Assembly (NCBI GenBank): GCA_002269645.1
Contig: NIVC01000406.1
Location: 563,481-627,480 of the forward strand
Direction of reading: 5' to 3'
Length of the DNA: 64,000 bases
Origin: Macrostomum lignano
Taxonomy: Eukaryota
Shown: piece after piece, positions 790-41,291 of the stretch
Layout: each line of letters starts with the position of its first letter
How positions within the stretch are numbered: the first letter of the stretch is position 1
Notes under the pieces: generated by a model
What the model was told of the DNA's origin: nothing
Seen by the model: the letters and a program-made list of their open reading frames with translations, nothing else
Databases searched by the model: none
Made by a program: the position numbers and the translations under genes

Positions 790-2225
790 TCAGACGCGCT
801 CCGGATCAAAAAACTGTCGAGGCCGCCTACCGCCGGCTCCGCCGAGCTGTTCAACCCGCTCGAAATGGTTGGCCATGGCCTCCAAAGCGATGTAGGCGGC
901 CGCCATGCCCAGCCGGTCTTGGATGAGCCGCAGCAGGAACACCCGGTCCGTGTCGGCCAGCGTTCTGACCAGCTGCGCCTCCTTCTGCCGCCGGTGCCAC
1001 TGGTCCTCCGCTGCGCCAGTTCCACCGCTCGTGCCGCTCGGCTGCGCCCATCGCCCCAACGTCTTCCACCAGCGGCGACGCCGCCGTTGCCGCTTCTCCA
1101 GATGGTCCAGCATCACCCGGGCGAACGTCTTGACGTAACTCCGCCGCCGGGAGCGCAGCGCCACCCGGACGAGCCAAAGCAGCGTGGAGCAGACGAGAAG
1201 CAAGCCGCAGGCGACAAGCCAGAACCAGAGGAACAGGGCGGTCTTGTTCACCAGCAGGTTGATGGGCAGGATGCACTGCAACGTGCGCTTGTTCCACCCG
1301 CCCAGCTGCCGCAGCGGCACGTCGCAAAAGGTCAACGTTGGAAAGGCGGGCGTTTCGACAACGCCATCGGCTTGCTTGGACTGCCGGGTCAGGCCTGCGA
1401 TGCCGAACATCGGGTTGGACAGTTCGAAGCTGTACTGCAGGTAGAACAGGCAGCCCAGAATGGCCAGCAGTCGCAATCCTTTAATCATCAGGTAGGTGAG
1501 GAACAGGCGAGAGCCGCTCAGGCTCACCGGCTGAACCGCGCTGCTTTTCCCTTTGCTCATCAGGTGAGCGCCCAGATGGCGTTTCAAACGGCCGGCTTCA
1601 TCCTGGTGCTCATTTTCGTCTTCTGAGGACGACTCGTCCGACTCGGACTCGGAAGCGTCGCCGTGCTCGCCAGCATTGGCGGCGGGTTCCGCCAGCGCCG
1701 CGGCCGCCTGCAGAGTCTGGTGCGGCTGGGTGGCGACCTGCTCGCAGATGAAGGACCACAACAGGTCGGGCAGCTTGAGCAGGAAGGCTAGCACCATTAG
1801 GATCATAGGCAGCCAGTAGTAGTATGCTGCGGGTTGAATGGAAATTTATGAATGGAACTCAGAATTAACTGCAGCAAGGTAAGAGACCGAAGCGACTCAC
1901 TCTGCGGCACCTTGACCTCCCAGGCGGCCGGCCCGGTCTTGTTGATGTTGGCGCCCGGCACTGCGTAGGCGCCCTCCATGTAGCAGTAGGCCTCGGCCGC
2001 CTGCTCCCACGGGTCCGGCCACTCGGCCGGCACGACGCAGTCGATGCTGTTGAAGAAGTACATCCTGGCTACCAGCACGGCGAACAGGGCCAGCACCACG
2101 GCCGAGGACACGTGACCGGAAAGCGAGTCGAAAAAATCCTGCGGCAACAGGCGGAAACCGAAGAACGCCTCGGCCAGCTGGTTGGCCACAATCAGCAGCA
2201 CAGCCTTCTGAGCGATGTGGCCCAT
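790..2225 (-). CDS. Innexin (gap-junction protein); exons 2225-1901 and 1826-790, about 453 aa
   Basis: ORFs 1803..2225 and 790..1806 join across a 74-nt GT..AG intron (1900-1827) to give ...VKVPQ-T-YYYWLPMIL, the innexin YYQW-type motif. Extracellular Cys pairs are present: SIDCVVP...AYCY and FPTLTFCDV...QCILPIN. Four hydrophobic segments. Confidence 0.93.
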
Positions 2226-4989: not shown

Positions 4990-7900
4990 TCATAAGATGG
5001 TGGCCCCGGACCGAGGCCTCAGGCCGCCCGTCCAGGCCGGGTCCTCGTCCTCCGGCCCCCCGCCGCCTCCCCAGCTCCGGCCGTCGACCAGGCGATCCCG
5101 GATAGCCGCCAGCTGCCTGCGGAATCGGCGCACTTTCTCGATGACCTCCTCCTGCATCAGCTTGAAGCACATGGCGAACACGGACAGCCCGATGGCCACG
5201 TAACAGACCGTGGCGACCAGCTTCTCCTTCGGGTTCTCGCTGTCCACTTTGGTGCCTGGATTGGAAGGGGTGTCAGGGGTGCAGACGGCACGGCACGGGG
5301 CTTTTGCGGAGCTGAAGAGTCTGAATCTTATCCAAGGAGTCTGAAGCTCATCTGAGGAGTCTGAAGCTTATCTGAGGAGTCTGAAGCTTATCTGAGGAGT
5401 CTGAAGCTCATCTGAGGAGTCTGAAGCTTATCTGAGGAGTCTGAAGCTTATCTAAGGAGTCTGAAGCTCATCTGAGGAGTCTGAAGCTTATCTGAGGAGT
5501 CTGAAGCTTATCTAAGGAGTCTGAAGCTCATCTGAGGAGTCTGAAGCTTATCTGAGGAGTCTGAAGCTTATCTAAGGAGTCTGAAGCTTATCTGAGGAGT
5601 GTGAAGCTCAACTTTGAAACCTGAGGCTTTCGAGCGCATCTGAAATATCTGAAATTCATACATGTACGAGGAACCCGAGGCATGTCTAAAATAAATGTCA
5701 CTTGAAACTTTTCTGCAAAATTTTCTGCTTATTAAAGAATTCCTTAGCTTTCAGAAAACCCGAAGCACCTGAGGCTCGGCTCACCTGGCACAATATCGCC
5801 GAACCCAATCGTACTCAGTGTCACAAAGCAGAAGTAAGACCATTTCACGTAGTCTTTGTCCTCCCAGATCGTGAAGATGAGCGCCCCGAATATGATGTAC
5901 AGCACCATCACCGACAGGGAAAGGAACAGTGGCACGGTGATCTGCCGCAGTGCCAGGCCCTGCATCGAGTCTTTGTCGTCGTCGTCTTCATCTGGCCGCG
6001 GCGGCGGAGTCGCCAGGTAGCTGGAGAGGCCGCCAGAGGTGCTCTCGTGCACGCTGATGTAACTGCAGCGGCGCAGCATGGGGTTCGAATCCCGCTTGAA
6101 CTCGTCCGCGGACAGCAGCGACGTGTCCGACTCACCCGACGATGCTGACGACGACGACGTCGACCAATCATCGGAGAGTCGGCGGCGAATTCTGCGACGG
6201 CGGCGAGACGGCGGCTGCAGGCTGCGCCAGGACGGCGGATCGGAGCGGCGCGGCGATGCGGACTCAGGTGCGGCGTCGGGGGCGGCGCCGGCAGCGGTTG
6301 GCGGCACCTTCAGCCGGGCTGTCGGCAGAGTCGGCTGTTCGGATCGGACTCGCCGGAGCTGCCGTCGCCGGTTGCCCGCGACGGCGCTAGCGCAAGCAGC
6401 GGTGGTTGCTGAGATGGCCGGCTGCAACTCCCGGTCGATGTCTGCCCAGTCAACCACGGGCACCGCGCGCAGCTCCTCGCTAGTCCACTCTCGAATCGGC
6501 CGCTGTGAGATAGGCGTCAGCACTTCGGCGTTCCAGCTTTCTTCGTCGGCTGCCGCTGACGCGGTGGTGGCGGCAGCGGCAGCAGAAGCTGCCCTGTCGG
6601 CAGCGAGCAGGGAATCAACGCCCGGCAGCTGCAGCGGGGCGGGCCGGGCCGGCAGGATACGAGCCACCACGTAGGCAACGCGGATGGAGGCGCCGCTGCC
6701 CGGGGACGGCAGCTGCTGGAGCAAAGGTGGAGGAGGGGGCGGAGACGACTGGGGCGGCAGCGGCCCCTGCAGCACCGACCAGCCGAGCAGCGGGCGCATC
6801 TCGGGCGAGGTTGTCTCCAAGGTCGGCGACGAAGCAGCCGCCGCTGCTGATGCCGTCAACCCAACTGCCGCTTCGTCGTCTTCATCGTCTTCCTCATCCT
6901 CGACGCTTGCGGCGGATCGACAGGCGGTCGTGAGTGTGGCACTGATCGCCGTCCAGGCCAGTCGGAACGGCGCCGTTGCCCAGCGCCGGCCAGAGACGAG
7001 GCAGGCGTGGACCCTGCGCCGGGTTCGCCGGCGGAATACGCGGCGCCAGGCGGGGCGCAGCAGGTCCCGGTAGAGCAGCCGGAAGCCGTCGGCCAGGTAG
7101 TCGCCAACGCTGTTGAGGTAAAGGAACACCATGGGGATGCCGAAGAAAGCGTATAGCATGGTGAGCAGGTAGCCGGTTGATGTCTTGGGCACGACCTGGC
7201 CGTAGCCTGCGGGATTGCGAGGATGAGAGAGATGAGCACGTGATGTGTCTTCTAATGTGCTGGAAAGAATGTACCAGTATGTGCCAATTATGTGATTGGC
7301 AAGCAGTCTACACTCTATGCAGTCAAAACCATCCGACGCACCAATAGTGGTGATGACAGTCACCACGTACAGCAGCGCGCCGGAGAAGCTCCAGTTCCAC
7401 TCGTCATCCAGGCGGCCGTTCCAGCCATGCACGTTGACGTAGACCACCAGGTCGCGGCTGAACTCCATCAGCCGGGCGGCCAGCGCTGCCCGCAGGCCGG
7501 CCGAGGCCGTCGCGTTCGCCAGCAGACGCCGGCAGGTCTCGTTCAGGCAGACCCGATCGGCGATCGCCTCCGCCATCTCGGCGCTGACGTTGTCGACGGC
7601 CTGTTCGAATCGGAGGCGGACATCTTGGCGGATGGCCTCCTCCTGCGGCAGCTCCAGCCGGCGGAAGACCATCCCGCCCAGCACGGTGTACGCCACGATG
7701 GCGCCGAAGAGGCCCAGATTGGAGAAGGCGAATGCCAGGAAGCGCTTGCAGCAGCTCAGAGCCTCTCGCGCTCGGCGCTTCCTGCGGAGCCGCTGCAGCT
7801 GCTGGCGCCGCTGCGACTTGGTCTGGCGGGCCAGCCGGTTGGCACCGCCGACGCCGCCTCCGCGGTACACTGGCAGGATGCTATGTCCACCGTCATGCGG

Positions 7901-8077
7901 CTGCCATCGCTGCCGGCGGCTCCAGAGCGTAAGACGCCGATGCTGCCGCTGGTAGTTCCGCGCCTGCTGCGGCTGCGGCTGTGGCGGGGTGCCGTCAGAG
8001 TCGATGGGCAGCGAGTTGATGACTCCCCGACTGGCCGCCGCCCTGGAGTTGGACGAGTTGGCGGCGGCGGTGTACAT
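4990..8077 (-). CDS. Two-pore-domain potassium channel (K2P/TWK family); exons 8077-7342, 7206-5785, 5255-4990, about 807 aa
   Basis: Pore loop 1 TTIG|YG is restored by removing a 135-nt GT..AG intron (7341-7207). Pore loop 2 is TLSTIGFGDIVPG|. The last exon gives LVATVCYVAIGLSVFAMCFKLMQEEV (M4). Splice phases sum to a multiple of 3. Confidence 0.93.
5317..5610. repeat. 20-bp minisatellite (GAGTCTGAAGCTTATCTGAG)n in intron 2 of the K2P gene
   Basis: About 14 tandem copies. Variants CTCA/CTTA and CTGA/CTAA recur with a 60-bp higher-order period. Confidence 0.95.
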
Positions 8078-9519: not shown

Positions 9520-10196
9520 ATGCCCCAGTCCATTAACTGCATCAGCATGATTTCTTATTGCAAATTGCTTTTAGGAGTTCAGTTCATCTTGGCAAATCCG
9601 CTGAGCATCGAAGCTGCCGCATCATTCGAGTTGTGTGAGTTGTGCGAGTTGTGTGAGCTGTGTGAGCTGTGTGAGTTGTGTGAGCTGTGTGAGCTGTGTG
9701 AGTTGTGTGACCTAATGCAACCTGTGCGAGTTTTGTAACCGAGTGCAGTGTAGCACCAGCTGCGCTCACCAGTAGTACCCACTCTGCGCGTGGAGTCCTG
9801 GAACTGGGCCGACCAGCTATTCACAACCGAGTACGAGTCGTTCCAGGTGAACGGCCCGGCAACCAACTACTCTATGGACTACAGCATCAGAGTGACCTCG
9901 GGAACGAACTCCAGCAACGCGTCCGGCTTCGAGCCGTTCTTCGACAGCTCCAGCCGGCCCTTCTCCACCCTGGACGTGGACAACGACCTTGAAGAGACAC
10001 AGTCGGTGTACCAGGCCGCTGCCGGAGGGGCTGGCTGGTGGTTCACTTTTCTCATCAGCGTATACCTAAACCCCAACGGTCTCTACCCGCCTCCTGACAA
10101 GCGGATCTGCATCGAAGCCGCTGACCAACGGCACCTGCTGCGGCCGGGTCGCCGTGAAGGCCATCCGAATGATGGTGACAGTGTGAACTCCCAGCT
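9520..10196 (+). pseudogene. Fibrinogen-related (FReD) pseudogene, a deleted paralog of the gene at 20153-22198
   Basis: The signal-peptide exon is kept. Intron-1 sequence is joined almost directly to the interior of the last exon (ACCCACTCTGCGCGTGGAG), so exons 2-3 and the exon-4 acceptor are lost. A further frameshifting deletion follows RICIEAA. Confidence 0.85.
9625..9710. repeat. 9-bp tandem repeat (GAGYTGTGT)n expanded at the exon-1 splice donor
   Basis: About 9-10 copies, absent from copy B. Confidence 0.9.
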
Positions 10197-10297
10197 GATG
10201 GCAGCAAACTGGCTGGATAGATACTCAGAGTAGCCATCTTGGTGATTTTTTTGTCATTTTTGCTGAACTTTTCTTAACAATTTCTGTTCATCTGCAA

Positions 10298-10620
10298 TCG
10301 TCTCTGTTTACTCCGTTTTCTCTCCCTCTGACCAGTTCAGTCTTGTCATTCTTATCTCTTCCTCGCTGCCTTCTGATTGGCTGCTCAACCTCGCCTCTTT
10401 CCCCAGTCCTGCACTCCACCCCTCACCCCTCCTTTTCTTATCTGCACTTAACCTCCTTTAATTTAAGGTCTAATTTAATTTAAAGTAGGATTGAAGTGCG
10501 CAACTGAGAAAAGAGGCGAGATTGAAGAGCCAATCAGAAGGCAGTGAGGGAGAGAGATAAGAATATAACAAGACTGAACTGGATAGGTACGGAGAGAAAA
10601 CACAGTAAACAGAGAGACGA
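10298..10620. repeat. Fold-back (imperfect inverted repeat, arms about 125 bp) 3' of the FReD gene; second copy at 22310-22671
   Basis: The reverse complement of 10490-10620 aligns with 10298-10425 (e.g. CCAGTTCAGTCTTGT, CTGCCTTCTGATTGGCT, CTCGCCTCTTT). Confidence 0.8.
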
Positions 10621-11060
10621 GTGAGTGCAGATGAACGTTTGTTCTAAAAATAGCATGCCTATCCGCCTTTAACCCACCTCTAGGCTGTTGCGTGTACATT
10701 TGCATTATGTACATTTTTCTATTTTTACAGATTCGATAAAATTTTTATTTCTAGCTCGAAATTCTTTAAGCAATGGTAACGACATATTGAAAAATGCACG
10801 TAAAAGCTGGATTTAAAACTAGTTTTCTGAAAATAAACTATACTTATGAGCTCTTCTTAGCGTGCGACACTAATTAATTTTTCTCGATCTTCACGCACTC
10901 TGCTTTGGGTCTGAAGCCCAGAAGTTCCTGAAGCAAAAAGCGTCGCCTAGCCTCTTTGAAGACACTGATTCAATATTCTTCAAGCCCGCGTATTTGTTGA
11001 GCCCCGTTTAAGGCATCCATACAGACTTGAGACTTGGATAGTAAACAAGATTTATTGATT

Positions 11061-12520
11061 TAGTGCCCCAAAGCAAAACACGAATACGCGATGTTGGCGA
11101 AAACGAAAGCAGTAACGAGGCCTTTTTATTTATATTTTAATTATTTAATGAAATGAAAAAAAAAACTTTAATGAAAAAAATAAGGATAAAAGAAGAAAAA
11201 AAATAACTGCGCGAAAACACTGCCGGCTCAACAGCGCGGCTGAAATAAAATAACCCCCCCTCGCCGGCGGAGGGTAGGGCGCCCACCTAAACAACACAGA
11301 ACGTACACACGCGGCGGGGGGTGCACAGACGCAGCGCGCTTGGGCACTAAAGCCGGTTTGCTCAAGGCAAGCCTAGCGCAAACCGCAGCCTTAGTGCCCC
11401 AAAGCAAAACACGAACACGCGATGTTGGCGAAAGCGGAAACAGTAACGAGGCCTCCAAAGCCGAAGCAACAACGGGAAAGCGCGCGAAAGAAATAAAATC
11501 AAAGGAAACGGAACATAGAAAAGCTGATGCCAACGTCAAACGAGAGATCCCACACCTCTAGCAAACACGACGGAAGCTGCCAATACCTGCTGCGACTGCG
11601 GGAGATATCGCTGCACTGAGTCGCTCTTCCAGTCACCGATCCGCATGATGTCGGGCACCGGCACACCCAACACCGAGGCCCAGGTCGCGCCGCCACGGCG
11701 GAGGCTGTGGGCTGAGAAGTGCTCACGCCTGAAGCCCGCAGCCCCTAGCTTGTCCGCTAGGAAGCAATCGAGTTGCCTGTCCGTCAGCAGCCGCTGGTTG
11801 CCTCCGGCGTCGTGATGAGTGAACAGAGGCGCATCAGCCGATTGCAGATTATTGAATCTTGCGTGCTGCTCGATTGCTAACACCGGGCACAGCAACTTCC
11901 GCCTCACTAGCCTTCGTAGAAGCACCTGGTGCACCCGCTCTTTGAACTGGAGAGTCTTCCCTTGCTCCAGGCCCAAGATCAGACCTCGCGGGTGTCGAAA
12001 GATGTCAGCGCAGCGCACACGTGCCGGACCTTTTCCCGAAGTCGGCAGCACGCTGGATTTTCGAAGCATGCCCCACCAACAGCAGATGTGACTGCCCAGC
12101 ATGCCAGCCTCTTGATGCCGGCCACTGTATCGAACTCGACACCAAGGAACGTCATGCGCTGAGTTGGTGTCTGACACTTTGCCCAGTTTACAGTGAAGCC
12201 CAGCCGCGTCAACAGGCCTGTCAGCTCGTCATAAAACAGCTGGCATTCGTCCCGCGAGCCCGCGAAGGCAAAATCGTCCAGGTAGGACTCGGTGCCCACA
12301 AAGCCTCTGCGCACCATCATTAAACGCACAGCATTGCTAAGATGGTGAAAACAGGTAACAGAAGCTGCAGCGCCGAACGGCAAACGGGTGTCATACATGT
12401 AGGTGGCTGCCTTGGACTCGCCGAAGCGGAACTTGATCCCTGTCCGGCTGAAATCATCGGGGTGAACACCACAGGCGCGCTACGCTTCGCTGAGATCCAC
12501 CTTGGTCATAAGGCAGCCTA
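11061..12520 (-). mobile_element. Internally deleted tyrosine-recombinase retrotransposon (DIRS/Ngaro group)
   Basis: RT motifs LPFG, YLDD, LGFTVNWAK and FLG in ORF 11979..12398. Recombinase C-terminus CPVLAI...HSLRRGGAT...IGDWKSDSVQRY in ORF 11536..12177. A 60-bp direct repeat occurs at 11063-11122 and 11394-11455. The element is absent at the paralogous site in copy B (about 24560-24625). Confidence 0.88.
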
Positions 12521-12619
12521 CAGGTCTATTGTTGACTGGTTCTTGGGTTGCATTGTGCTTCTTTAAGTAGCTAGTCAACATTGCGACTGTTTAATCTCGG
12601 CTTCTTAAATCTCTGTTTT

Positions 12620-12696
12620 AAGAACTGTAAGAACTAAGAACTAAGAACTAAGAACTAAGAACTAAGAACTAAGAACTAAGAACTTTTAAGAACTAA
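12620..12696. repeat. 7-bp microsatellite (AGAACTA)n
   Basis: About 10 copies, absent from copy B. Confidence 0.9.
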
Positions 12697-13166
12697 GGTT
12701 GTAAATCCCTGAATATCGGGTTTCCAGCTGCTGCTGCATGCTGGCTGTGGGGATGCATGCTATTTTACTAGACTTGGTCAAAATATGCAGCCAAAATATG
12801 CAGCTCAGCTGTCACATAATCGTACTACACAGGCTACCATTATTCCACTTCGCCACATACGAAGCAAATTTAAAATGTAATTTAGAATTAATTGACCGAC
12901 CGCACCAAACGAGTGGTCTAATAAGTATTTTGGTTTTCTGCAATTCAGCACGTTGAATCAAAAAGCCATTGCATATCCGATTTTCTCGATATTGCAGCTT
13001 GCAGAAACGGGCAGGCTGGCAAAGGCGGCAGAAATCCAGGAAATAAAAATACAAAAACAATGCAAAGTTAGGTGAAGATCAAACAATATAGTTTATTTCA
13101 AACACCCATTAAAGAAGGAACACAAAACCGAATCGTATTGATGTTTTAGAAGGTGAAACAATCCAT

Positions 13167-16100
13167 TTAACCACGTCTGGCGGCACGTCTAAGGTTGCGT
13201 CTGGCGCGTCTGACACGACGACCACCTCTTCTCACATCGCGGCTTCTGCGGGCACGTCTGGCTGCGCGTCTAAGGTTGCGTCTGGCGCGTCTGGCACGAC
13301 GACCACCTCTTCTCACATCGCGGCTTCTGCGGGCACGTCTGGCGGCGCGTCTAAGGTTGCGTCTGGCGCGTCTGACACGACGACCACCTCTTCTCACATC
13401 GCGGCTTCTGCGGGCACGTCTGGCTGCGCGTCTAAGGTTGCGTCTAGCGCGTCTGGCACGACGACCACCTCTTCTCACATCGCGGCTTCTGCGGGCACGT
13501 CTGGCGGCGCGTCTAAGGTTGCGTCTGGCGCGTCTGACACGACGACCACCTCTTCTCACATCGCGGCTTCTGCGGGCACGTCTGGCTGCGCGTCTAAGGT
13601 TGCGTCTGGCGCGTCTGGCACGACGACCACCTCTTCTCACATCGCGGCTTCTGCGGGCACGTCTTGCAGCGCGTCTACGGATGCGTCTGGCGCGTCTAGC
13701 AATGCGTCTACGGATGCGTCTGGCGCGTCTGGCACGACGACCACCTCTTCTCACATCGCGGCTTCTGCGGGCACGTCTGGCTGCGCGTCTAAGGTTGCGT
13801 CTGGCGCGTCTGGCACGACGACCACCTCTTCTCACATCGCGGCTTCTGCGGGCACGTCTGGCGGCGCGTCTAAGGTTGCGTCTGGCGCGTCTGACACGAC
13901 GACCACCTCTTCTCACATCGCGGCTTCTGCGGGCACGTCTGGCTGCGCGTCTAAGGTTGCGTCTAGCGCGTCTGGCACGACGACCACCTCTTCTCACATC
14001 GCGGCTTCTGCGGGCACGTCTGGCGGCGCGTCTAAGGTTGCGTCTGGCGCGTCTGACACGACGACCACCTCTTCTCACATCGCGGCTTCTGCGGGCACGT
14101 CTGGCTGCGCGTCTAAGGTTGCGTCTGGCGCGTCTGACACGACGACCACCTCTTCTCACATCGCGGCTTCTGCGGGCACGTCTTGCAGCGCGTCTACGGA
14201 TGCGTCTGGCGCGTCTAGCAATGCGTCTACGGATGCGTCTGGCGCGTCTGGCACGACGACCACCTCTTCTCACATCGCGGCTTCTGCGGGCACGTCTGGC
14301 TGCGCGTCTAAGGTTGCGTCTGGCGCGTCTGACACGACGACCACCTCTTCTCACATCGCGGCTTCTGCGGGCACGTCTTGCGGCGCGTCTAAGGTTGCGT
14401 CTGGCGCGTCTGACACGACGACCACCTCTTCTCACATCGCGGCTTCTGCGGGCACGTCTTGCGGCGCGTCTAAGGTTGCGTCTGGCGCGTCTGGCACGAC
14501 GACCACCTCTTCTCACATCGCGGCTTCTGCGGGCGCGTCTAGCAATGCGTCTACGGATGCGTCTGGCGCGTCTGACACGACGACCACCTCTTCTTACATC
14601 GCGGCTTCGGCGGGCACGTCTTGCAGCGCGTCTACGGATGCGTCTGGCGCGTCTAGCAATGCGTCTACGGATGCGTCTAGCGCGTCTGACACGACGACCA
14701 CCTCTTCTCACATCGCGGCTTCTGCGGGCACGTCTGGCTGCGCGTCTAAGGTTGCGTCTCGCGCGTCTGGCACGACGACCACCTCTTCTCACATCGCGGC
14801 TTCTGCGGGCGCGTCTAGCAATGCGTCTACGGATGCGTCTGGCGCGTCTGACACGACGACCACCTCTTCTTACATCGCGGCTTCTGCGAGCACGTCTTGC
14901 AGCGCGTCTACGGATGCGTCTGGCGCGTCTAGCAATGCGTCTACGGATGCGTCTGGCGCGTCTGGCACGACGACCACCTCTTCTCACATCGCGGCTTCTG
15001 CGGGCACGTCTGGCTGCGCGTCTAAGGTTGCGTCTGGCGCGTCTGGCACGACGACCACCTCTTCTCACATCGCGGCTTCTGCGGGCACGTCTGGCGGCGC
15101 GTCTAAGGTTGCGTCTGGCGCGTCTGACACGACGACCACCTCTTCTCACATCGCGGCTTCTGCGGGCACGTCTGGCTGCGCGTCTAAGGTTGCGTCTAGC
15201 GCGTCTGGCACGACGACCACCTCTTCTCACATCGCGGCTTCTGCGGGCACGTCTGGCGGCGCGTCTAAGGTTGCGTCTGGCGCGTCTGACACGACGACCA
15301 CCTCTTCTCACATCGCGGCTTCTGCGGGCACGTCTTGCAGCGCGTCTACGGATGCGTCTGGCGCGTCTAGCAATGCGTCTACGGATGCGTCTGGCGCGTC
15401 TGACACGACGACCACCTCTTCTCACATCGCGGCTTCTGCGGGCACGTCTGGCTGCGCGTCTAAGGTTGCGTCTGGCGCGTCTGGCACGACGACCACCTCT
15501 TCTCACATCGCGGCTTCTGCGGGCACGTCTTGCGGCGCGTCTAAGGTTGCGTCTGGCGCGTCTGGCACGACGACCACCTCTTCTCACATCGCGGCTTCTG
15601 CGGGAACGTCTTGCAGCGCGTCTAAGGTTGCGTCTCGCGCGTCTGGCACGACGACCACCTCTTCTCACATCGCGGCTTCTGCGGGCACGTCTGGCTGCGC
15701 GTCTAAGGTTGCGTCTGGCGCGTCTGGCACGACGACCACCTCTTCTCACATCGCGGCTTCTGCGGGCACGTCTAGCTGCGCGTCTAAGGTTGCGTCTCGC
15801 GCGTCTGGCACGACGACCACCTCTTCTCACATCGCGGCTTCTGCGGGCGCGTCTAGCAATGCGTCTACGGATGCGTCTGGCGCGTCTGACACGACGACCA
15901 CCTCTTCTTACATCGCGGCTTCTGCGGGCACGTCTGGCGGCGCGTCTAAGGTTGCGTCTGGCGCGTCTGACACGGCGACCACCTCTTCTCACATCGCGGC
16001 TTCTGCGGGCACGTCTGGCGGCGCGTCTAAGGTTGCGTCTGGCGCGTCTGACACGGCGACCACCTCTTCTCACATCGCGGCTTCTGCGGGCTCGTCTGGC

Positions 16101-16454
16101 GGCTCGTCGGTTCTGCCGCCTTGATTGGCGGCGACTCCGCCTCTCGCTTCTTCTGTCCCTTCTTTCCTCTGCGCTTTTCCTTGGCGGTCTTCTGCAAGGC
16201 TTCTGAGCCATAGCGGGCTTCTTAGCCGATCCAGCAATGGCCGCAGCTTTAGCGGCTGCTGGCTTCTTCAGCTTATTCTTCGCATTCGGTGGTGGCGCTG
16301 AGAGCTGAAAATTGCAAATGATTTTCGTAATTATTCAAAATTGAAGCTGCCATTAGTGCTACATACGTACGAGCGTAGTTATGTGCAACAGAGTTCAACT
16401 TACCACTAGCGTGCAAAGCAGCGCGGCGCAAGCTGCCAACAGAATGAGTCTCAT
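13167..16454 (-). CDS. Secreted Arg-rich repeat protein, copy A; exons 16454-16404 and 16304-13167, about 1062 aa
   Basis: CAAAC-ATG at 16454. The 17-codon exon MRLILLAACAALLCTLV is followed by a 99-nt GTAAGT..TTTTCAG phase-0 intron. It splices in frame to LSAPPPNAKNKLKKPAAAK...AMAQKPCRR and the 81-nt (27-aa) Arg repeat. CATAAAAG lies upstream (16519-16512) and AATAAA about 70 nt after the stop (13097-13092). Repeat variants are mostly synonymous in this frame. Confidence 0.85.
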
Positions 16455-17269
16455 GTTTGAGCTGCTTGGGAGCTGACTGGATTGAATTTCGGAAGCCCCA
16501 AAACGGACCTACTTTTATGCTGTTGTTGAGTTTGACCCCCCCTCGGGTGGCCGTTTCTTCACCTGCCGGATGGCAACTGCTGAGCTGACAGACTGTCAAA
16601 TTTTTTACATTTGTTTGCACGCTGCTTCGCACTGGAAGTTCGTGCGGCTTGAATGCCGTTCATTTTTGGACAATTTTGTTTGTTTTGTTCGACTCTGCTG
16701 ACTAGTGCAAAAGAATTCTCAAGAACGAAATAATCCTCCCTACTCTCAAGACATTACGGCCTTGTCGTTTTGGTGACTTTTGCTGTGCTGAGCAAGCACG
16801 GGACTGAAGTGGCGCTTGTTTGACAGCAGAATCTGCAGGTGCGACTCCTCAAACATGCGAAAAGTTGCTAAGGCGATCGATTTTGACTAAGAGTTTTTTG
16901 CGACTCAAACGTTCATGCTCACACTGAAGAGTAAATTGCAAGAAACCACTTTTGCAATTCGATGATTAAGAATTTTGGTTGACGTCAGCACTGCATTCAA
17001 AATATCTTTGTATCCTTGATGCGAGAGCTCTCATAATGCCGTTGCGGGTAGGGATTTTTCAGGCCAGTGACTGACTGATGCCGTGGGGGTCACGAAAACT
17101 GTAAAAGGTTTATCAAGTAGCTCACACCAGTGTGGCAGATTATTAAATTCCCCAGATTATGATTCCTGATAGTAATGTATGCCTGTGTTCCTTTAGCACT
17201 GCGGTTCTTGCCGCCTCTCAACCTCTTCGTCAGGGGTGAGGCGGCTAGAACGACCCGGCGTCTACTAGT

Positions 17270-18125
17270 GTCCGGCGTCAAATTCCGCTACATTAGGGCA
17301 CCTGCTAAGCGAAACCTCGTCACGTCATAGCGACCTGTGCCTCAACATTCTCAATGAGTGCCAGGCCAATTGCGTCTTCACCGATGGCATTGCCTCAACG
17401 CTCAATCTGAGACAACGCAATCAGTAGCTATCAATTAGTAGCTATCGACCCGCACGATACCATCAATTACCACTGAAACCCTGGTGAGCTCCACTGCTAC
17501 CACTGACGGTTCTAAGCAGTCAGTCAGCACCGGCTTTGGTGTTGGAATCTTCCTGAACGGGCGGGTCATACTGGGGTAAAAATCAATGGGTTTTTCAAAA
17601 AAGTTGTCGCCCTCAGCTCTTGCACTACAGAGCTTCTCGCCACTGGCGTAACTAGTAAGAAAATCGTTTTCCATTCGGACAGCCAAGCTGCCTTGCACGC
17701 CATCAGTGGTTGCAGCGTCAACTCTGTTACAGTCCTCGACTGTATCAACTCCTTAACATGTTGGATTCTACGAGTACCAGCAAAATTACCCTTAAGTGGG
17801 TTTCGGGGCATGATGGGATCCAAGGGAATGAGCTGGCTGACGCCCTTGCAAAAGTTGGCGCCTCCGGCTCCTCTCTCGGGCCCGAATCCATTGTACCGAA
17901 TACCGATCCCCAGCTGCGTCATCGACTCGCGCATCAAAGACTAGATCAGGACCCAGCACCGCTCAACTTGGCGAACTGCACTACCTGTAGGCATTCCAGA
18001 GGCGCTGTCGCTCAGCCGTCTCACCAGCTCCGGAAGCTCCTCTTGCGCATCTCGCGAAGATATATCTGGCCTGCCACTGCCACCATGACTATCTCAGGTC
18101 ACGGCTGTTTTTTCAGGCACCAGTA
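17270..18125 (+). mobile_element. Non-LTR retrotransposon (LINE) RNase H / 3' fragment, degenerate
   Basis: TDGSK...GFGVG (about 17500-17545), IVFHSDSQAAL (about 17660-17695), LKWVSGHDGIQGNELADALAK and ISGHGCFF. Frameshifted. Confidence 0.8.
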
Positions 18126-19795
18126 CACACCAGTAACCCAGCACTTCGCGTTCACACTGCACTACCGCAAAGGCGACGACAACCCGGCAGACCCGCTGAG
18201 CCGCAATCCGCTGCCAAGCGCATCGTTGCACAAAGACGAGGCTGAGGACACCAGACTGTGCAACGCCGTTGTCCAAGCGGCCACCCCGAAGGGCCTGACC
18301 ATCGACAGGATCCGGGCTGCGACCGAGAGAGACCCAGCTCTGGTGGTCGTGCGCGTCATGCGCGCCTTGGCAACAGAAAACTGGAGCTGCGGCGCGGCGA
18401 GTCCTGCGTACAGTTTTCGGTCCCTCAAAGCCGAACTGAGCGTTCACGCAGGCCTTCTGCTCCGGGGAAACAGAATCGTGATCCCGGCGGAACTTCAGCA
18501 GCTGACGATCGGTTTAGCGCACCAGGGCCACCTCGGACAGAAAAAGACGTGCGACCGACTGCAGCGTAAGGTCTGGTGGCCTGGCATGACCAAGCAGGTC
18601 GAGGCGGTCGTCACTAACTTCTCCGGTGCCAAGCGGCCCGGACTGACGGCGCCGTTAAATAACCGCCGATGCAGCCGACTCCGCTTCCGTCGGGGCCTGG
18701 CAATCGCTCAGCGTCGATGTGTGCGGACCATTCCTACGGGCGAGAACGTAGTGGTCTTGGTGGACTACTTCAGCCGCTACCCGGACCTCTACGTGGTGCG
18801 AAGCCTCACCAGCGCCAGCGTCATCAACTGCGTCATGGCCTCATTCAGCCGCTTCGGGGTGCCGCAGCAGATCACTACGGACAACGCCACCTACTTTACG
18901 AGCGAGGAATTCAGTGTGTTTCTGGACGGCCTCGGGGTTCGACAGCGCAGGGTCACCCCGCTCTACCCGGCGGCGAACGGCGAGGTGGAGCGCTTTAACC
19001 GCAGCCTCAACAAGGCCATCAACGCGGCCACAGCCGACGGCAAGGACTGGCGGCGTGGCGGCGGGCGATTCACGACTGGTTGCTCGGATACCGTAACTCC
19101 GTGCACCGAGGCACCGACCGCACGCCCAACGATCTCATGTTTAACCGAGAGACCGGCGGCATCCTGCCATCCGGCCTGACAAAGCAAACCGGCAGCTCCG
19201 GACGGCAGCTCCAGCGCCACGAGTGCGGCTACAAGCAGGCGATGCGCAAGGCGGCCGACACGCGGCGATCGGCTGCGCCACACGGCATCCTGGCAGGCGC
19301 TCGCGTGCTGCTCAGAAACCGCGGCAAGGCCAAGCTGCGCTGTCCGTTCGACCCGCGGCCTTGGCTTGTCAGGGCAGTCAGTGGCGACGCCCTGACTCTG
19401 CAACGCGGCACGGCAGTCATCCGGCGGCATGTGACCGAGACGAAGCCGCTGCGTGAGTGCCCCTGGGACCTTGACGAGCTGGACGGCGATCAGCGGCCGG
19501 GGGCGCCGGTGACGGAGGTAAATCCGGCCAACGACGGCCCGATTGCACAGAGGCCTCATCCCAGGACAGCAAAGCGGCCCGTCTGCTACAAGCAGTGATT
19601 TGATTCGAACTGAGCCGGAACGCTGTCTAAGATCGGCATGCTTTGATTGCTTAAGTATTTAATCGTTCAAAATCAAAATTTTTGCTACTGCTTTACTAAT
19701 TAATTTTTTTAATCCTTCACATCGTTTCTCGTCAATTTTCGCAATGAAATTTTAAAACCTCTCGTATTGGACTTTTCTTTTGCTTTGGGGAGAGA
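18126..19795 (+). mobile_element. Gypsy-type LTR retrotransposon integrase region, degenerate
   Basis: HYRKGDDNPADPLSR linker; AHQGHLG...WWPGM zinc-finger region; VDYFSRYP, TDNATYFTS and ANGEVERFNR (DDE core). Several frameshifts. Polypurine tract GGGGAGAGA at 19787-19795. Confidence 0.9.
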
Positions 19796-19975
19796 TGTGG
19801 TGCGCAGCCTATGCGAGTACAATGCCCTTTCTCTTGCTCTCTAGCCAACGTGCTCAGCACCCCAATGTATTACGTAACTCATAGCTGCACGTCGGCAGCT
19901 GCGTGAATATATATCGCAAATATACGGCTCTTAGAGGCCAAGATTCTTACCCGCCAAGCGGACTACGAGCACTAC
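19796..19975 (+). mobile_element. Probable truncated 3' LTR of the Gypsy element
   Basis: TGTGG begins immediately after the polypurine tract. The right boundary is inferred only from the start of duplication copy B. Confidence 0.5.
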
Positions 19976-20152
19976 AGTTGCAGAAGGATGCTTGGAAAGA
20001 TCGCTTCATTTTCGATTCAACTGTCGCCAGCGTGGAATGGCAGAATGAAACAACCAATGAGGAGAGTTTGATGACGATTTTTGTACCCTCAGGTAGGGAT
20101 ATATAGGAGCTAAGGCTAGAAAGATGTGAGGCAAATTTATCAGATTAATGCA

Positions 20153-22198
20153 ATGCCCCAGTCCATTAACTGCATCAGCATGATTTCTTATTGCAAACTG
20201 CTTTTAGGAGTTCAGTTCATCTTGGCAAATCTGCTGAGCATCGAAGCTGCCGCATCATTCGATTTGTGTAAGTTTTTAGAGTTGTGCGAGTTTTGTCACC
20301 GAGTGCAGTGTAGCACCAGCTTCCAGAGCAGAACTAGTGATTCTCTTTGATTTCAGACAGCCGAGCGGCTGCGCCAGGGTCGCCGGCCATTGAGGTGAGC
20401 CGAGCGCCGTCGCAGAGCGCCATCGAGTGCTCGGCCCAGTGCAGCTGCGCTGGGCTGACCTGCAGGTCGGCGCTGTTCCTGCCGGCCAACGGAGTCTGCC
20501 TGATGTCGGAGCAGCCTGCGACGGATTTTTCCGGCGTTGTTGGAGGCGCGGCCGGCAGGCCATTCGTGAAGTCCAGCACAGGTTCTTCTGCTTCGGGTAA
20601 GTGCGAGTGTTTGACCTTGACTGCCAGCTGAGCAGTGCATTGAAATGCCAAAGCGGAAAACTCCCCAACGAACTCAACAGTCCCTGGTAACATCACGGTC
20701 AGCGTCGGTGGCCGGAAGTTCCGCGTGATTCAACAGCGAGTTGATGACAGCGTGAGCTTCGCCCGGACCTGGGCCGAGTACGAGGCCGGCTTCGGGGACA
20801 GCAACAACTTCTGGATCGGTGAGCGCTCGCCGAACCATCTTGTAGGCAAGCGCGAGCTTTACCTACGGACTGATAGCTGAGTGATGGTGTGCAAAGCTGA
20901 TTGAGGGTATGCAAAGCTGAGTGAGAGAATGCGCAGCGAAGCGGAAGGCCTAGCTACTGTTGTACCCCCCGGGATGGCCTCGGGAGTTGCAAATCCGGCT
21001 AGGGTAGCCGGGGCTGCCTAGCTGGGGGACAACAGGTCCCGCATACGCCTGTCCCTAACGCTGCGAAAGTTCACAGTAGCCTCCGGCTGGCGAAACTTCA
21101 CTTGCCGGCCCCTAAACACTGCGAGACTTCACAGTCGTCCCGATCCACGCGGCACCCCAGAAGAGGAAAACACTCACACCGGTAGTTCGGGCGGACTCCA
21201 ATAACGCGTCGAGTAAAACGCGTACCGAACGTCACGTGTTTATTATTACTCTACTACATTGCCGCCAGCAGGCCAAGGGAGGGGGGCGTAGGGACGGGAC
21301 GGGGCGGGGCGCGCGCATTAAAAAAATAGCAAGGAAAGTAGGGGACGAGGGTAAACTGATAGACAATAATCAAGCATACCACCCTGCTGGCCACGCCGAT
21401 CACAAGCCGCCAGCCGGGGAGGGGTGGAGCAAACTTGAGCCGGCCTGCGCACGAGACCAGGGGCCCGGGCAGGCCGTAGGCCAGACTAGGGTGAGGCTTA
21501 AGTCCCCAAACCCCAGCCCAACTGGCCGGCCCAACCCAGATCAAGGGGGGGGGGAGAAAAAAGAATGAAGAGAAAAAAGGCCGGGGGGTGGAGCCCTCGC
21601 TGACGCAACACGGCACAACACTACACAAGTGTCCGAATACCGTACACCTGGCCGGTTCCAATGGAACAGTGCAAATAAATTCAAGGCTCCGATCCTCACT
21701 GAACTGCAATCAATGAAATCCCCAGGCCTGGCCGCCATCCACAACCTGACTAAGGCGATACCCACCCTGCGCGTGGAGTCCTGGAACTGGGCCGACCAGC
21801 TATTCACCACCGAGTATGAGTCGTTCCAGGTGAACGGGCCGACAACAAACTACTCTATGGACTACAGCATCAGAATGGCCTCGGGAACGAACTCCAGCAA
21901 CGTGTCCAGCTTCGAGCCGTTCTTCGACAGCTCCGGCCGGCCCTTCTCCACCCTGGACGTGGACAACGACCTTGAAGAGACACAGTCGGTGTCCCAGGCC
22001 GCTGCCGGAGGGGCTGGCTGGTGGTTCACTTTTCTCATCAGCGTATACCTGAACCCGAACGGTCTCTACCCGCCTCCTGACAAGCGGATCTGCATCGAAG
22101 CAGCCTCCGACTTTAAGTTTATGCACTGGTACCTGAACAACGGCACCGGCTGCGGCCGGGTCGCCGTGAAGGCCATCCGAATGATGTTGACAGTGTGA
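20153..22198 (+). CDS. Secreted PAN/apple + fibrinogen-C domain protein (FReD); exons 20153-20267, 20357-20596, 20681-20818, 21726-22198, about 321 aa
   Basis: All introns are GT..AG phase 1. Signal peptide MPQSINCISMISYCKLLLGVQFILANLLSIEA; PAN-like C-x3-C-x6-C-x11-C (SAIECSAQCSCAGLTCRSALFLPANGVCL); FBG motifs VIQQRVDDSVSFARTWAEYEAGFG...FWIG, FSTLDVDND and GAGWW. Confidence 0.88.
20958..21646 (-). mobile_element. Possible solo-LTR-like insertion in intron 3 of the FReD gene
   Basis: On the minus strand it starts TGTACGG, ends TACAACA and contains AATAATAAA. No target-site duplication was found. Confidence 0.35.
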
Positions 22199-22888
22199 AC
22201 TTCCAGCTGATGGCAGCAAACTGGCTGGATAGATACTCAGAGTAGCCATCTTGGTGATTTTTTTGTCATTTTTGCTGAACTTTTCTTAACAATTTCTGTT
22301 CATCTGCAATCGTCTCTGTTTGCTCCGTTTCTCTCCCTCTGACCAGTTCAGTCTTGTCATTCTTATCTCTTCCTCGCTGCCTTCTGATTGGCTGCTCAAC
22401 CTCGCCTCTTTCCCCAGTCCTGCACTCCACCCCTCACCCCTCCTTTTCTTATCTGCACTTAACCTCCTTTAATTTAAGGTCTTTATCTTATTTTTTATTA
22501 CATTAAACTAGAGGGGGGCTAAGTGCCAGAGAAAAGTAGGATTGAAGTGCGCAACTGAGAAAAGAGGCGAGATTGAAGAGCCAATCAGAAGGCAGTGAGG
22601 GAGAGAGATAAGAATATAACAAGACTGAACTGGATAGGTACGGAGAGAAAACACAGTAAACAGAGAGACGAGTGAGTGCAGATGAACGTTTGTTCTAAAA
22701 ATAGCATGCCTATCCGCCTTTAACCCACCTCTAGGCTGTTGCGTGTACATTTGCATTATGTACATTTTTCTATTTTTACAGATTCTATAAAAATTTTACT
22801 TCTAGCTCGTAATTCTTTAAGCAACGGTAACGACATATTGAAAAATGCACGCTGGATTTAAAACTACTTTTCTGCAAATTAAACTATG

Positions 22889-24121
22889 CTCAGCAACAGT
22901 CAAAAGTTCCACCCCTATCACGCCTAGTCAGAGATAACTTCTCGCTCACAATTCAACCCGCGAGTTTCGCAACTACGCCGCGAGGAGGGTGATTGAATCA
23001 ATAATAAACGCCAGTCGCACAAAATCACAAGTTTATTTTTATGCAATATGCAGTTAGAATCGCAATGCTTAATACCGCGTGTGGGAACCACTCGCACGCA
23101 GAAGAGCGGCGACTCTGCGGGGCATCCCCAAGATGAGGCGGCGCAGAAAGTCCCGGGGAAGTTGCTGCCAAGCGTTTGCAATGGCGTGACGTAGCAGTTG
23201 CAGTTGCCAACTCCTCCGAAAGCAGCGTCGGCAAACGGTAGGAACCGAGTCTGCAGAAGATCTGCGTAGCTATTAGCGTTCACGTTGGCATCCAGGAAGA
23301 CGATATTCGTCCTGGCTCTCAGCGCACTGTACATTCTGCTGCAGCATCTCCTGCCGCGGTTCTCGCCAAACGCGGGTGCGACCATCTGCTTGGAAAAGTC
23401 GGAACCGGCTCTCATCAGTGAAAACAACGCGTCGCCACTGCTGCTGCCTCCAGTGGACGCGCTGCATCGCCGACTGCTCTCGGCTGGCGATGTGGGCAGG
23501 ACTGAGTCGAGGCCGCTTGCGCATCTTGCGAGAGCGGAGGCTGCCTCCCGAATTCGAAGTCGAACTGTCTGGGCGCTCAGGATATTTCCTGCTCTGGGAA
23601 ACCCCACATCAGACGGAGCAGGGTGGCTGGCAGGGTGGGAGTTCGCCTTAATATTCGCAGCAGACGGCGATTTGCTCTGGCTGTTGAGCCACGGAGATCA
23701 AGGCGCTGTTGTGTTCTAATTGACACAGAGAGTTTCGTTTGATTGAAGCTTTTGAGCTCAGAGATACACATCTCGCTCACAATAAATTTATAGAGATCAA
23801 ACTCCTACTTGCACGTTGCAATCTCCTACTCATTCATGTCTGAGTACAGTACGAGCGTATACGCCCACGCATTCAATAAGGCCAATAGTTCATTGTCAGT
23901 AGTCAATTCATTGCGCGAGCATTGTCAATCACAACAGGCGCTGACTGCCTTTCGCAGCGTGCTCCACGCTGCCAGTCTCACGGGACTTTGTCAGCAGTTT
24001 TAGAATTGCCGCTCGCGATCTTCCAAATCTGCGAGCAACTTCTCTGATGGACACACCGACTTCCAGCATTCCAACAGCACGCCATCGTTCAGCATTAATC
24101 ATTTGCCGGACTATTTTTGAA

Positions 24122-24156
<35 letters not shown>

Positions 24157-24330
24157 ATTAAACTGAACATTTGTCCTTTTAAAGTTACGCAGTCTTGTAC
24201 CATTACACAGACCCAAGCCCCCCCCCCCAAGTGACAATAAGCTTCGCTGTGTGCCGCAACTTGAGTCAGTCACAATAGGTGAGAAAAATTCCATCTCGCT
24301 TGGAGGGTGGAAATTTTGACTGTTGCTGAG
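22889..24330 (-). mobile_element. Tc1/mariner transposon, degenerate and internally deleted
   Basis: TIRs CTCAGCAACAGTCAAAAGTTCCACCC (left) and AGGGTGGAAATTTTGACTGTTGCTGAG (right), inserted in a TA run that is empty in copy A (about 10849). Pieces: HTH (VGVSIREVARRFG), WRRVVFTDESRF and C-terminal IANAWQQLPGDFLRRLILGMPRRV. The D34E region appears deleted. Contains (TG)n at 24124-24155. Confidence 0.9.
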
Positions 24331-25183
24331 TATATACTTATAAGCTCTTCTTAGCGTGCGACACTAATTAATTTGTCTGGATCTTCACGCACTCTGCTTT
24401 GGGCCTGAAGCCCAGAAGTTCCTGAGGCAAAAAGCGTCGCCTAGCCTCTTTGAAGACACTGATTCAATATTCTTCAAGCCCGCGTATTTGTTGAGCCCCG
24501 TTGAAGGAATCCATACTACTCAGACTTGAGACTTCGATAGTAAACAAGATTTATTGATTCTGCACTAGCCAGTATTTGGCGAGATGTTGGGAATTTGCTG
24601 ACTGCAAACTGAAATGCTTGCTCAGGTCTATTGTTGACTGGTTCTTCGGTTGCATTGTGCTTCTTTGAGTAGCTAGTCAACATTGTCACTGTTTAATCTC
24701 GGCTTCTTAAATCTCTGTTTTATTCCTGAATATCGGGTTTCCAGCTGCTGCTGCATGCTGGCGGTGGGGTTGTATGCTATTTTACTAGACTTGGTCAAAA
24801 TATGCGGCCAAAATATGCAGCTCAGCTGTCATATAATCGTACTACACAGGCTACCATTATTCCACTTCGCCACATACGAAGAAAATTTAAAATGTAATTT
24901 AGAATTAATTGACCGACCGCACCAAACGAGTGGTCTAATAAGTAGTTTGGTTTTCTGCAATTCTGCACGTTGAATCAAAAAGGCATTGCATATCCGATTT
25001 TCTCGATATTGCAGCTTGCAGAAACGGGCAGGCTGGCAAAGGCGGCAGAAATCCAGGAAATAAAAATACGAAAACAATGCAAAGTTAGGTGAAGATCAAA
25101 CAATATAGTTTATTTCAAACACCCATTAAAGAAGGGTCACAAAACCGAATCTTATTAATGTTTTAGAAGATGAAACAATCCAT

Positions 25184-35443: not shown

Positions 35444-36128
35444 ATCGAATCTTAAGCAGCTGATGCTCATGATCAAGTGGAGCATCTTAAGGACCAAACC
35501 AAAATTTGTAATTCTTTCTAATCCTTCGCTAATGCACTTTGACGCAATAGTTCATGTAGCCCTTCTTGTGGAGTGAAGTGAATTGAAAAATACAAAAATA
35601 TTTGCAAATTTAATATTGGCAAAGATTTCTGACACAAGCATGCATCCCACTTTTGTGTTCGACACTTTACAGGTACAAGGGAAACCCGTCCCTCCTGCGC
35701 CATGCGTCCTGACGCTTAGCTGCAGGTGGCTAGAGTCACGGCGTTCTGACGCCCCAGATTCCGGGAGCATGGCAAGCAGTGCCCGTTTACTAGTACAATA
35801 GCCTGTACACCCGACCGTACCCCGTGAGCCAGGAATTCAGGGTTACAACGCCATGTTATCAATCATTTATTTTGGCCATAGACATCCGCAGCATGCCGAT
35901 GGGAGCCGAAAGGAAGCTCAGCTCCGGACAAAAACAACTGTCTGCAATCAACTAGAAACACTCCCACCCAGGTGTACTGTGATTAACTAATGCTTTGTGC
36001 TAACTTAAAGGCTAGAAGAGACCCTTTCTGCAAAAGCTAGGTCTCTAACTAATCAATTTGCTTCGAAAAAAGAAGAAAATCAGGCAAAACAGTGACGCTT
36101 CCGGAATTAATTAAAGTTTCGGCCTTAA

Positions 36129-41287: not shown

Positions 41288-41291
41288 CTAG

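Follow-up and report, generated by a model that had tools for sequence, protein, structure and literature searches.

The locus considered here raises two questions: (i) is an arginine-rich repeat array that stays open over 3.1 kb a gene at all and (ii) if it is, what kind of protein would it encode and where would that protein act. The array lies on the minus strand of a 64-kb stretch of contig NIVC01000406.1 (positions 563,481–627,480; hereafter the window), part of the Mlig_3_7 assembly (NIVC00000000/GCA_002269645) of the free-living flatworm Macrostomum lignano (PMC5730564). Coordinates are window positions throughout; a window position p corresponds to p + 563,480 on NIVC01000406.1 and to p + 157,419 on NIVC01000301.1. 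An earlier note on this DNA had proposed that a hidden signal-peptide exon turns the array into a secreted polycation of a kind not previously recognized. The gene model in that proposal passes the sequence-level tests applied here, namely the rarity of the exon with its splice donor, the hydrophobic core of the signal and an excess of synonymous change; its claim to novelty was overstated. We consider it probable that the array is a real gene encoding a signal-peptide-bearing Arg-repeat protein. Both copies of this putative gene appear to be unannotated in Mlig_3_7, and for now it is a well-supported gene prediction rather than a demonstrated protein.

The gene model and its signal-like exon

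The model for the first copy (copy A, minus strand) begins with an ATG at 16454 in the context CAAAC-ATG-A, with an A at position −3. The coding part of exon 1 (16404–16454, 51 nt) reads MRLILLAACAALLCTLV and holds the n- and h-regions of the predicted signal peptide. It is followed by a 99-nt, phase 0 intron (16305–16403), read from the sequence as GTAAGT...TTTTCAG, and by exon 2 (16304–13167, 3,138 nt), which opens with LSAPPPNAKNKLKKPAAAKAAAIAGSAKKPAMAQKPCRRPPRK... and ends in a TAA stop at 13169–13167. Across the predicted junction at 16404/16304 the sequence is TTGCACGCTAGTG/CTCTCAGCGCCACC, and the spliced product would be 1,062 aa long, running from MRLILLAACAALLCTLV directly into LSAPPPNAKNKLKKPAAAKAAAIAGSAKKPAMAQKPCRRPPRK... 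and then into the repeats. A TATA-like box, CATAAAAG, is located 58–65 nt 5′ of the ATG (16512–16519) as a putative promoter element and is identical in the second copy (copy B, 30997–31004). An AATAAA poly(A) signal lies 70 nt past the copy-A stop (13092–13097) and is kept in copy B at 25109–25114. The small exon with its CAAAC-ATG, the GT-AG intron spliced in frame, the flanking TATA-like box and poly(A) signal, and the order of APPP, Lys/Ala-rich linker and Arg repeats in the translation are thus all present as the earlier note had described them.

Splicing would be needed to connect the signal peptide with the Arg ORF (open reading frame), because the intron holds stops in the Arg frame (its in-frame translation reads VS and then stops) and translation of the unspliced form from the first ATG yields only 19 codons. 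An alternative acceptor at 16297, 7 nt downstream, is out of frame and meets a stop after 9 codons.

The N-terminus was judged heuristically, from hydropathy, charge and the −3/−1 rule. Its n-region is M-R, its h-region, LILLAACAALLCTLVL, comprises 16 uncharged residues with a mean Kyte–Doolittle hydropathy of 2.92, and the cleavage zone V-L-S/A places small residues at −3 and −1 with prolines right behind (V-L-S/A-P-P-P). By this heuristic, the predicted N-terminus has the n-region, the h-region and the small −3/−1 residues of a cleavable eukaryotic signal peptide. When both strands of the window (128 kb) were scanned for ATG starts followed by a 14-residue uncharged stretch with a mean hydropathy of at least 2.4, six signal-like segments were found, and a GTRAGT donor directly adjoins two of the six, those at 16454 and 30939. 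Each of these two lies 150 nt upstream of an Arg array and splices into the frame of that array. The signal-peptide exon is therefore more than a chance occurrence, since in all 128 kb no donor-bearing segment occurs away from the two Arg arrays.

The start of exon 2 (16109–16304) comprises the LS that ends the signal peptide, the predicted VLS/A cleavage site, APPP, the Lys/Ala-rich linker and a lead-in rich in Arg, Ser, Gln and Glu; it also contains the only Cys of the mature chain. The rest of the exon (13167–16108) is the repeat array, 34 SRD-anchored units ending in ...RRAARRG-TAA. Tandem Repeats Finder resolves 13172–16108 into an 81-nt unit and a 114-nt variant with higher-order periods of 162, 357 and 438 nt; the unit lengths are all multiples of 3, corresponding to 27 and 38 aa. 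The commonest unit in copy A is SRDVRRGGRR(A/V)RRARRNLRRAARRARR, and a minority of units carry IR in place of NL or an 11-aa insert, RRIRRRIARRA. The 27-mer quoted in the earlier note does contain 15 Arg and a single acidic residue, an Asp. One invariant S-R-D occurs in every unit, and S-R-D-V-R-R-G-G is unchanged in nearly all 91 units, an invariance that reaches synonymous sites.

The composition that results is extreme. The copy-A product is 53.8% Arg, 16.8% Ala, 6.6% Gly and 0.8% Lys, and the computed mature chain of 1,043 aa (130 kDa) has 570 Arg, 9 Lys, 38 acidic residues and a net charge of about +541. It contains 274 RR pairs, one Cys and no N-glycosylation sequon, and the non-basic stretches between RR pairs are 1–2 residues long (A, S, DV, GG, V/A, NL, AA). 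The non-Arg residues of the unit (V, A, N, L, A, A, A, S) fall inside a 140-degree arc of the helical wheel, giving a hydrophobic moment of 1.24 compared with 0.59 ± 0.30 in shuffles (P = 0.024), and single-sequence AlphaFold2 predicts a disordered linker (pLDDT <55) followed by one continuous helix (pLDDT >90, pTM 0.34). The helical face and the predicted helix suggest an ordered repeat design. A single-sequence helix on an Arg/Ala-rich chain should be taken only as helical propensity, and an all-Arg helix without counter-ions would be strongly destabilized. We also note that the Arg codons of 13170–16304 (minus strand) are AGA (45%), CGC (34%) and CGT (19%), with almost no CGG, CGA or AGG, and that RR pairs are nearly always written in fixed codon pairs (AGA-CGC, AGA-AGA or CGT-CGT).

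The second copy has the same layout (25184–30939, minus strand), with exon 1 at 30939–30889, the intron at 30888–30790 and exon 2 at 30789–25184. With its frame repaired at one position, it would encode 1,885 aa (55.6% Arg) with about 59 units. Both copies sit in a segmental duplication in which unit A (9776–17268) matches 21759–31753, the flanks agreeing at 93–96% by blastn; each unit comprises an Arg gene and a convergent Fibrinogen_C-like ORF.

Two comparisons point to coding constraint. Across 105 position-aligned codons, copy A differs from copy B by 8 synonymous and 4 non-synonymous changes (pS 0.099, pN 0.017, pN/pS 0.17; binomial P = 0.003), and among 71 81-nt units drawn from both copies, 13 variant types are synonymous and 11 non-synonymous where 28% synonymous would be expected (P = 0.006). 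The other two sense frames have no synonymous bias and a stop in every unit. The Arg frame itself is kept over 3.1 kb in copy A and, except for one homopolymer deletion, over 5.6 kb in copy B.

Relation to known polycations

The reading that best accounts for the locus as a whole combines a real gene, secretion and a condensing or cohesive role, and we would put it at slightly less than an even chance. Two tandem paralogues would each use the small first exon to supply a cleavable endoplasmic reticulum (ER) signal peptide, and the second exon would add a short disordered Lys/Ala linker and then 34 (copy A) or about 59 (copy B) Arg-rich units of 27 or 38 aa. The cleaved chains would be of ~130 kDa (A) and ~230 kDa (B), with a net charge of about +540 for A and around double this value for B. 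Arg-rich polymers of the poly-GR/PR kind are toxic in the cytosol and nucleus, and co-translational entry into the ER would keep the Arg polymer away from RNA and DNA. Gland cells would keep the chain in secretory granules, its charge balanced by a polyanion, for example an acidic protein or a glycan bearing sulfate or carboxylate groups; candidate sources are the adhesive, rhabdite or mucus, cement and prostate glands. Once released into sea water by exocytosis, the polymer would attach to anionic surfaces or glycans and act electrostatically, as a condensing or cohesive agent. Guanidinium groups bind sulfate, phosphate and carboxylate through bidentate contacts, and these withstand salt better than Lys does, a property that would fit a condensing, cohesive or dense-core role. 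A parallel may be seen in the Lys/Arg-rich regions of Mlig-ap1 and in the stand-alone ap3 proteins of other flatworms, which constitute the dense core of adhesive vesicles and are presumed to form bridges with anionic partners.

The earlier note went too far in calling this a polymer without a recognized counterpart. In the proseriate Minona ileanae and the polyclad Theama mediterranea, ap3 corresponds to the Lys/Arg-rich flanks of ap1 in the form of an independent protein (PMC9229212, PMC6745481). Tmed-ap3 of T. mediterranea has 3,700 aa, a signal peptide and low-complexity GRKHS sequence with a pI of 13.24; Lys, Arg, Gly, His and Ser make up 88% of it, including 1,051 K (28% Lys), 880 R and 581 G (PMC9229212). 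Knock-down of Mile-ap3a/b, the ap3 of M. ileanae, leaves adhesive vesicles without an electron-dense core (PMC6745481). Tmed-ap3 and Mile-ap3 are domain-free secreted polycations with signal peptides, and the combination of a signal peptide with a giant domain-free polycation is thus an established kind of flatworm secretory protein.

The predicted Arg protein resembles ap3 in having a signal peptide followed by stand-alone, domain-free, low-complexity basic repeats of more than 1,000 residues; that it is domain-free, as the earlier note had it, agrees with a Pfam scan of the product, in which no family matched even at E ≤ 10. The two differ in composition, ap3 being built of Gly-Arg-Lys(-His-Ser) with more Lys than Arg and the Arg protein of 54% Arg, 17% Ala and 0.8% Lys, and also in the well-defined 27-aa unit of the Arg gene, a comparison made against the published description of ap3. 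Expression in adhesive glands has been shown for ap3. Because the Lys content of the Arg protein does not fit and the protein is known here from sequence alone, we have not filed it as an ap3 member, yet it may have the same mode of action. An ap3-like cohesive or condensing role is a tentative proposal, one that we hold to be possible by analogy. What appears to be new in this locus is the almost exclusive use of Arg, with Ala second, in a crisp 27-aa unit, which would make the protein an Arg-only variant of the polycation type.

The second comparison is within the species. Mlig-ap1 is a secreted cohesive adhesive protein of M. lignano with more than 3,600 aa of KR regions; in the mechanism proposed, these regions attach to anionic glycans and a small anionic molecule releases them; heparin blocks attachment of the animals, and free Lys, Arg or a cationic peptide blocks their release (PMC6410801). 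Since Mlig-ap1 is secreted, M. lignano is able to translocate and secrete very long polycationic chains. The predicted Arg protein would share with Mlig-ap1 the species, secretion and very long cationic repeats. In Mlig-ap1 the KR regions flank a core made up of C-type lectin, vWD, C8, TIL and EGF domains, none of which the Arg protein has. Mlig-ap1 has repeats of the Lys/Arg/Gly/Pro type; those of the Arg protein are without Lys or Pro, and the protein shows no similarity to the Mlig-ap1 repeat peptide SRKPRRKNRKSRKP. The Arg gene is also separate from Mlig-ap1, ending at its own TAA and AATAAA.

Two further systems are instructive by analogy. The sandcastle worm cement proteins Pc1, Pc2, Pc4 and Pc5 are secreted, repetitive and basic, and form complex coacervates with the polyphospho-Ser protein Pc3. 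Storage in granules with a polyanionic partner and charge complexation in sea water are what the cements would have in common with our proposal for the Arg protein, whereas their Gly/Lys/His/Tyr-based composition, much shorter length, DOPA content and annelid origin set them apart, and no homology is implied. Protamines are similar in composition: they contain 50–65% Arg in RR/RRR clusters between small residues, a range that includes both copies, and the repeat unit is about the size of a fish protamine. They differ in being 30–100 aa long, nuclear and without a signal peptide, compared with 1,062–1,885 aa and a predicted signal peptide here, and no protamine or linker-histone Pfam profile matches at E ≤ 10, so the product is not placed among the protamines. 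The protamine salmine is reported to undergo liquid–liquid phase separation with multivalent anions (PMC6523547).

A bolder form of the proposal, which we think unlikely, is an 'extracellular protamine', a gland-secreted, Arg-only giant polymer condensing polyanionic glycans, foreign nucleic acids or surfaces. Such a polymer would, for example, pack sulfated mucus or rhabdite material or form a salt-resistant guanidinium coacervate in sea water. It would represent a class of biomaterial mechanistically distinct from the Lys-based ap3 and Mlig-ap1, and a missing component of secretions that is invisible to trypsin-based proteomics. More generally, if expressed, the protein would rank among the large secretory-pathway proteins with the highest arginine content described, would stand as an Arg-only counterpart beside Mlig-ap1 and ap3, the cohesive proteins rich in Lys and Arg, and would offer a natural test case for guanidinium-based, salt-tolerant complex coacervation. 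M. lignano is the flatworm with the best-characterized adhesive system, and transgenesis and RNAi are at hand.

Alternative explanations

Several observations weigh against the reading of the array as a gene for a secreted, condensing polymer. Two concern the proposed role. The Arg gene is, unlike ap3 and Mlig-ap1, almost without Lys or Gly-Lys motifs, so the Lys-based cross-linking or Kringle binding proposed for ap3 would not be possible. In addition, the mature copy-A chain contains 122 furin-type R-X-K/R-R motifs, and the intact polymer may therefore not survive the secretory pathway. It is conceivable, if rather improbable, that the product is instead a secreted defensive, antimicrobial or cell-penetrating polycation, or a polyprotein cut to peptides of 27 or 38 aa or to smaller furin-type Arg peptides. 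Besides the abundance of cleavage motifs, the unit (27 aa, 15 Arg) matches a fish protamine in size and composition, protamines and oligo-Arg peptides are antimicrobial and membrane-translocating, the near-invariant S-R-D-V-R-R-G-G could mark a processing site or hinge, and the units have the pattern of an amphipathic helix. With 1–2 residues between dibasic sites, however, prohormone cuts followed by carboxypeptidase trimming would leave nothing peptide-like; these spacings are too short for a classical multi-copy neuropeptide or antimicrobial precursor, and 27-aa peptides could be obtained from the array only by a non-classical cut, e.g. between SRD and V. The hydrophobic face, of Ala, Val and Leu only, is narrow and unlike that of lytic peptides, and the invariance of SRDVRRGG includes synonymous sites, so that it may reflect repeat homogenization rather than selection.

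The remaining observations concern the gene itself, and several of them would fit a non-functional array, either an 81-nt minisatellite or a decaying young gene, whose frame is not used for protein. Tandem repeats make up 15% of the M. lignano genome, and the window contains about a dozen other arrays. The opposite strand of the copy-A array is open as well, over 1,003 codons (13195–16206, plus strand), neither strand is readily closed in a repeat whose period is divisible by 3, and a 27-nt array elsewhere in the window likewise has long ORFs in both directions; taken by itself, the long ORF is thus no evidence of a gene. An antisense frame with coinciding wobble positions shows an equal synonymous bias. 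The codon use of the array also differs from that of four other window ORFs, which favor CGG and CGC and use AGA for only 5 of 69 Arg codons.

Copy B adds two further points. Its frame closes after 451 codons where one C is gone from a C-run (29501–29506, minus strand; TTCCGC, compared with TTCCCGC in 12 other units), and this missing C may go back to an error of the long-read assembly or to a mutation that truly disables the copy. A homopolymer deletion within an unpolishable repeat is a typical long-read assembly error. The two copies are, moreover, 96–98% identical, so their agreement is not independent evidence. The introns differ at 0 of 99 positions compared with ~4% in the flanks, which makes gene conversion likely and deprives copy B of value as an independent confirmation. 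The conserved layout to which the earlier note had appealed is there, with the same exons, intron and flanks, but as the product of a recent and possibly homogenized duplication it was set aside as evidence for the gene. The segment from the 5′ untranslated region through exon 1 and the intron (16305–16514 and 30790–30999) has 1 difference in 210 nt, and the upstream, downstream and exon-2 synonymous sites differ at 4–10% between copies; this near-identity of the 5′ segment suggests a gene-conversion tract or constraint on the segment.

Searches for relatives of the product were negative. In exact look-ups, a gene-position index and a collection of 15 billion proteins had no record of the Arg products, spliced or unspliced, or of the antisense ORF, and phmmer with the N-terminus plus two repeats found no match in 5.8 billion word-indexed clusters. 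The homology search of the non-repetitive N-terminus that had been suggested earlier was run with 85 aa of exon 2 as the query of an exhaustive phmmer, which found no match among 1.84 billion representative proteins; in a local control, identical fragments of 60–70 aa would score at E values of 1e-8 to 1e-32 (about 1e-21 for a 70-aa fragment). Scans of metagenomes for the repeat core and the spliced exon 1–exon 2 junction gave no match, as expected for an animal gene, and an Rfam scan of the whole window gave no family. In the literature, full-text search for the repeat peptide returned zero papers, the supplements of a prostate in situ screen held no matching sequences, and nothing relevant was found on Macrostomum protamines or on rhabdite arginine. 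The product is also not on record, by exact look-up, in the transcriptome-guided GenBank annotation of GCA_002269645.1. Its absence there is weak evidence, since the annotation is sparse in this region and likewise lacks a protein for the neighboring two-pore K+ (K2P) channel and fibrinogen-like genes. Genes of this kind lie in a common blind spot, as they would escape short-read transcript assembly, transcript-guided annotation and tryptic proteomics alike, and the authors of the ap1 and ap3 studies found such repeats hard to assemble from short reads (PMC9229212, PMC6745481).

In spite of these points, we regard a non-functional array as quite unlikely. A signal-like ATG exon, a perfect GTAAGT, an in-frame acceptor, a TATA-like box and an AATAAA are together very unlikely by chance, the synonymous excess is found both between copies and among units, and the single interruption of the frame is of the long-read-error type. 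Being common to the sense and antisense frames, the synonymous bias supports coding constraint and not a choice of strand; the assignment to the minus strand is based on the ATG, the signal exon, the splice sites, the TATA-like box and the AATAAA, all of which lie on that strand. The antisense Leu/Arg ORF (13195–16206, plus strand) was considered as a gene and rejected, having no ATG, no signal and no nearby poly(A) signal and being closed inside the linker region.

The third alternative is an intracellular protein, either a giant sperm chromatin protein resembling protamines or H1 tails (initiated at an internal ATG at 16211 or processed after targeting) or a membrane-anchored protein with a cytosolic Arg domain. 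In its favor, the product is about as rich in Arg as protamines are, its linker (KKPAAAKAAA...SAKKPA) is similar to the tails of histone H1, from which protamine-like proteins evolved, testis-type genes (TEX47, DNAI3-like) are among the neighbors in the window, and more positive charge follows the hydrophobic segment than precedes it, an asymmetry that under the charge-difference rule would favor a cytosolic C-terminus. We nevertheless judge it very unlikely, given that the first AUG of the predicted mRNA is that of the signal peptide and has a good context, that the unspliced form ends after 19 codons and has further intron ATGs before 16211, that the h-region, with 16 residues and small residues at −3/−1, matches a typical cleaved signal and is on the short side for a membrane span, that 1,062–1,885 aa is 10–50 times the size of any protamine, that the protamine and linker-histone profiles of Pfam do not match, and that the cytosolic and nuclear toxicity of poly-GR/PR-type polymers fits co-translational sequestration.

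Surroundings of the array

The Arg genes were duplicated together with a neighbor. The Fibrinogen_C ORFs at 9790–10233 and 21629–22198 (both plus strand; Pfam E values 3e-6 and 1e-10) each lie 3 kb downstream of, and convergent with, the corresponding Arg-gene copy. No matching protein was found for the Fibrinogen_C-like gene in the collection searched, and it appears to be unannotated as well. At the same relative position of the two duplication units (10841–12705 and 22887–24722) are unlike mobile-element remnants: a DIRS-like tyrosine recombinase and reverse transcriptase fragment in the copy-A unit (11536–12398) and a Tc3-type helix-turn-helix fragment in the copy-B unit (23929–24294). The units are separated by 17268–21759, which contains a piece of an LTR-retrotransposon with RNase H and integrase (17710–19179).

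Apart from the arrays, the window looks like an ordinary animal locus with genes for an innexin, a K2P channel, Translin, TEX47 and a DNAI3-like WD protein, and with LTR-retrotransposon, DIRS-like, Tc3-like and piggyBac-like remnants. The exact product of the single-exon TEX47-family ORF (43954–44769) was found only in GCA_002269645.1, on contigs NIVC01000301.1 and NIVC01000406.1. These contigs are 100% identical over 20.8 kb (NIVC01000301.1:191373–212188 and NIVC01000406.1:597434–618249, window 33954–54769), for which the GenBank gene calls were read directly. The calls differ between the identical stretches, Translin having 337 aa in one and 129 aa in the other and the DNAI3-like protein 588 and 947 aa; this is assembly redundancy with inconsistent annotation, and the stretch by itself fits both contigs as the origin of the window.

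The Translin range is rich in tandem arrays. A cluster in and around it (34401–34964, 36128–38208, 38716–39052, 39588–40116 and 40371–40777) has periods of 16, 23, 33 and 44 nt, the 44-nt array reaching 47.7 copies, and some of its ORFs are rich in Pro, Gln and Thr (PQTPQSPNSTI...). The 27-nt array at 41279–41944 (24.7 copies; ORF 40851–42005, minus strand) is open on both strands, which read HTLIPHINH... and VWDQGVVID..., and its minus-strand reading continues, without a change of frame, into the Translin domain ORF. This could be intron read-through or a repeat-expanded Translin N-terminus.

Elsewhere in the window, the K2P channel gene (5744–8077, minus strand; Ion_trans_2, E 8e-23) lies in a stretch of 67% GC and has no annotated protein that we could find; its 777-aa ORF reads through an apparent in-frame intron that splits the pore motif TTIG/YG. 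An innexin ORF is located at 790–1806 (minus strand; E 9e-34), and a piggyBac-type transposase ORF with a zinc finger at 57905–58972 (minus strand; DDE_Tnp_1_7, E 1e-40).

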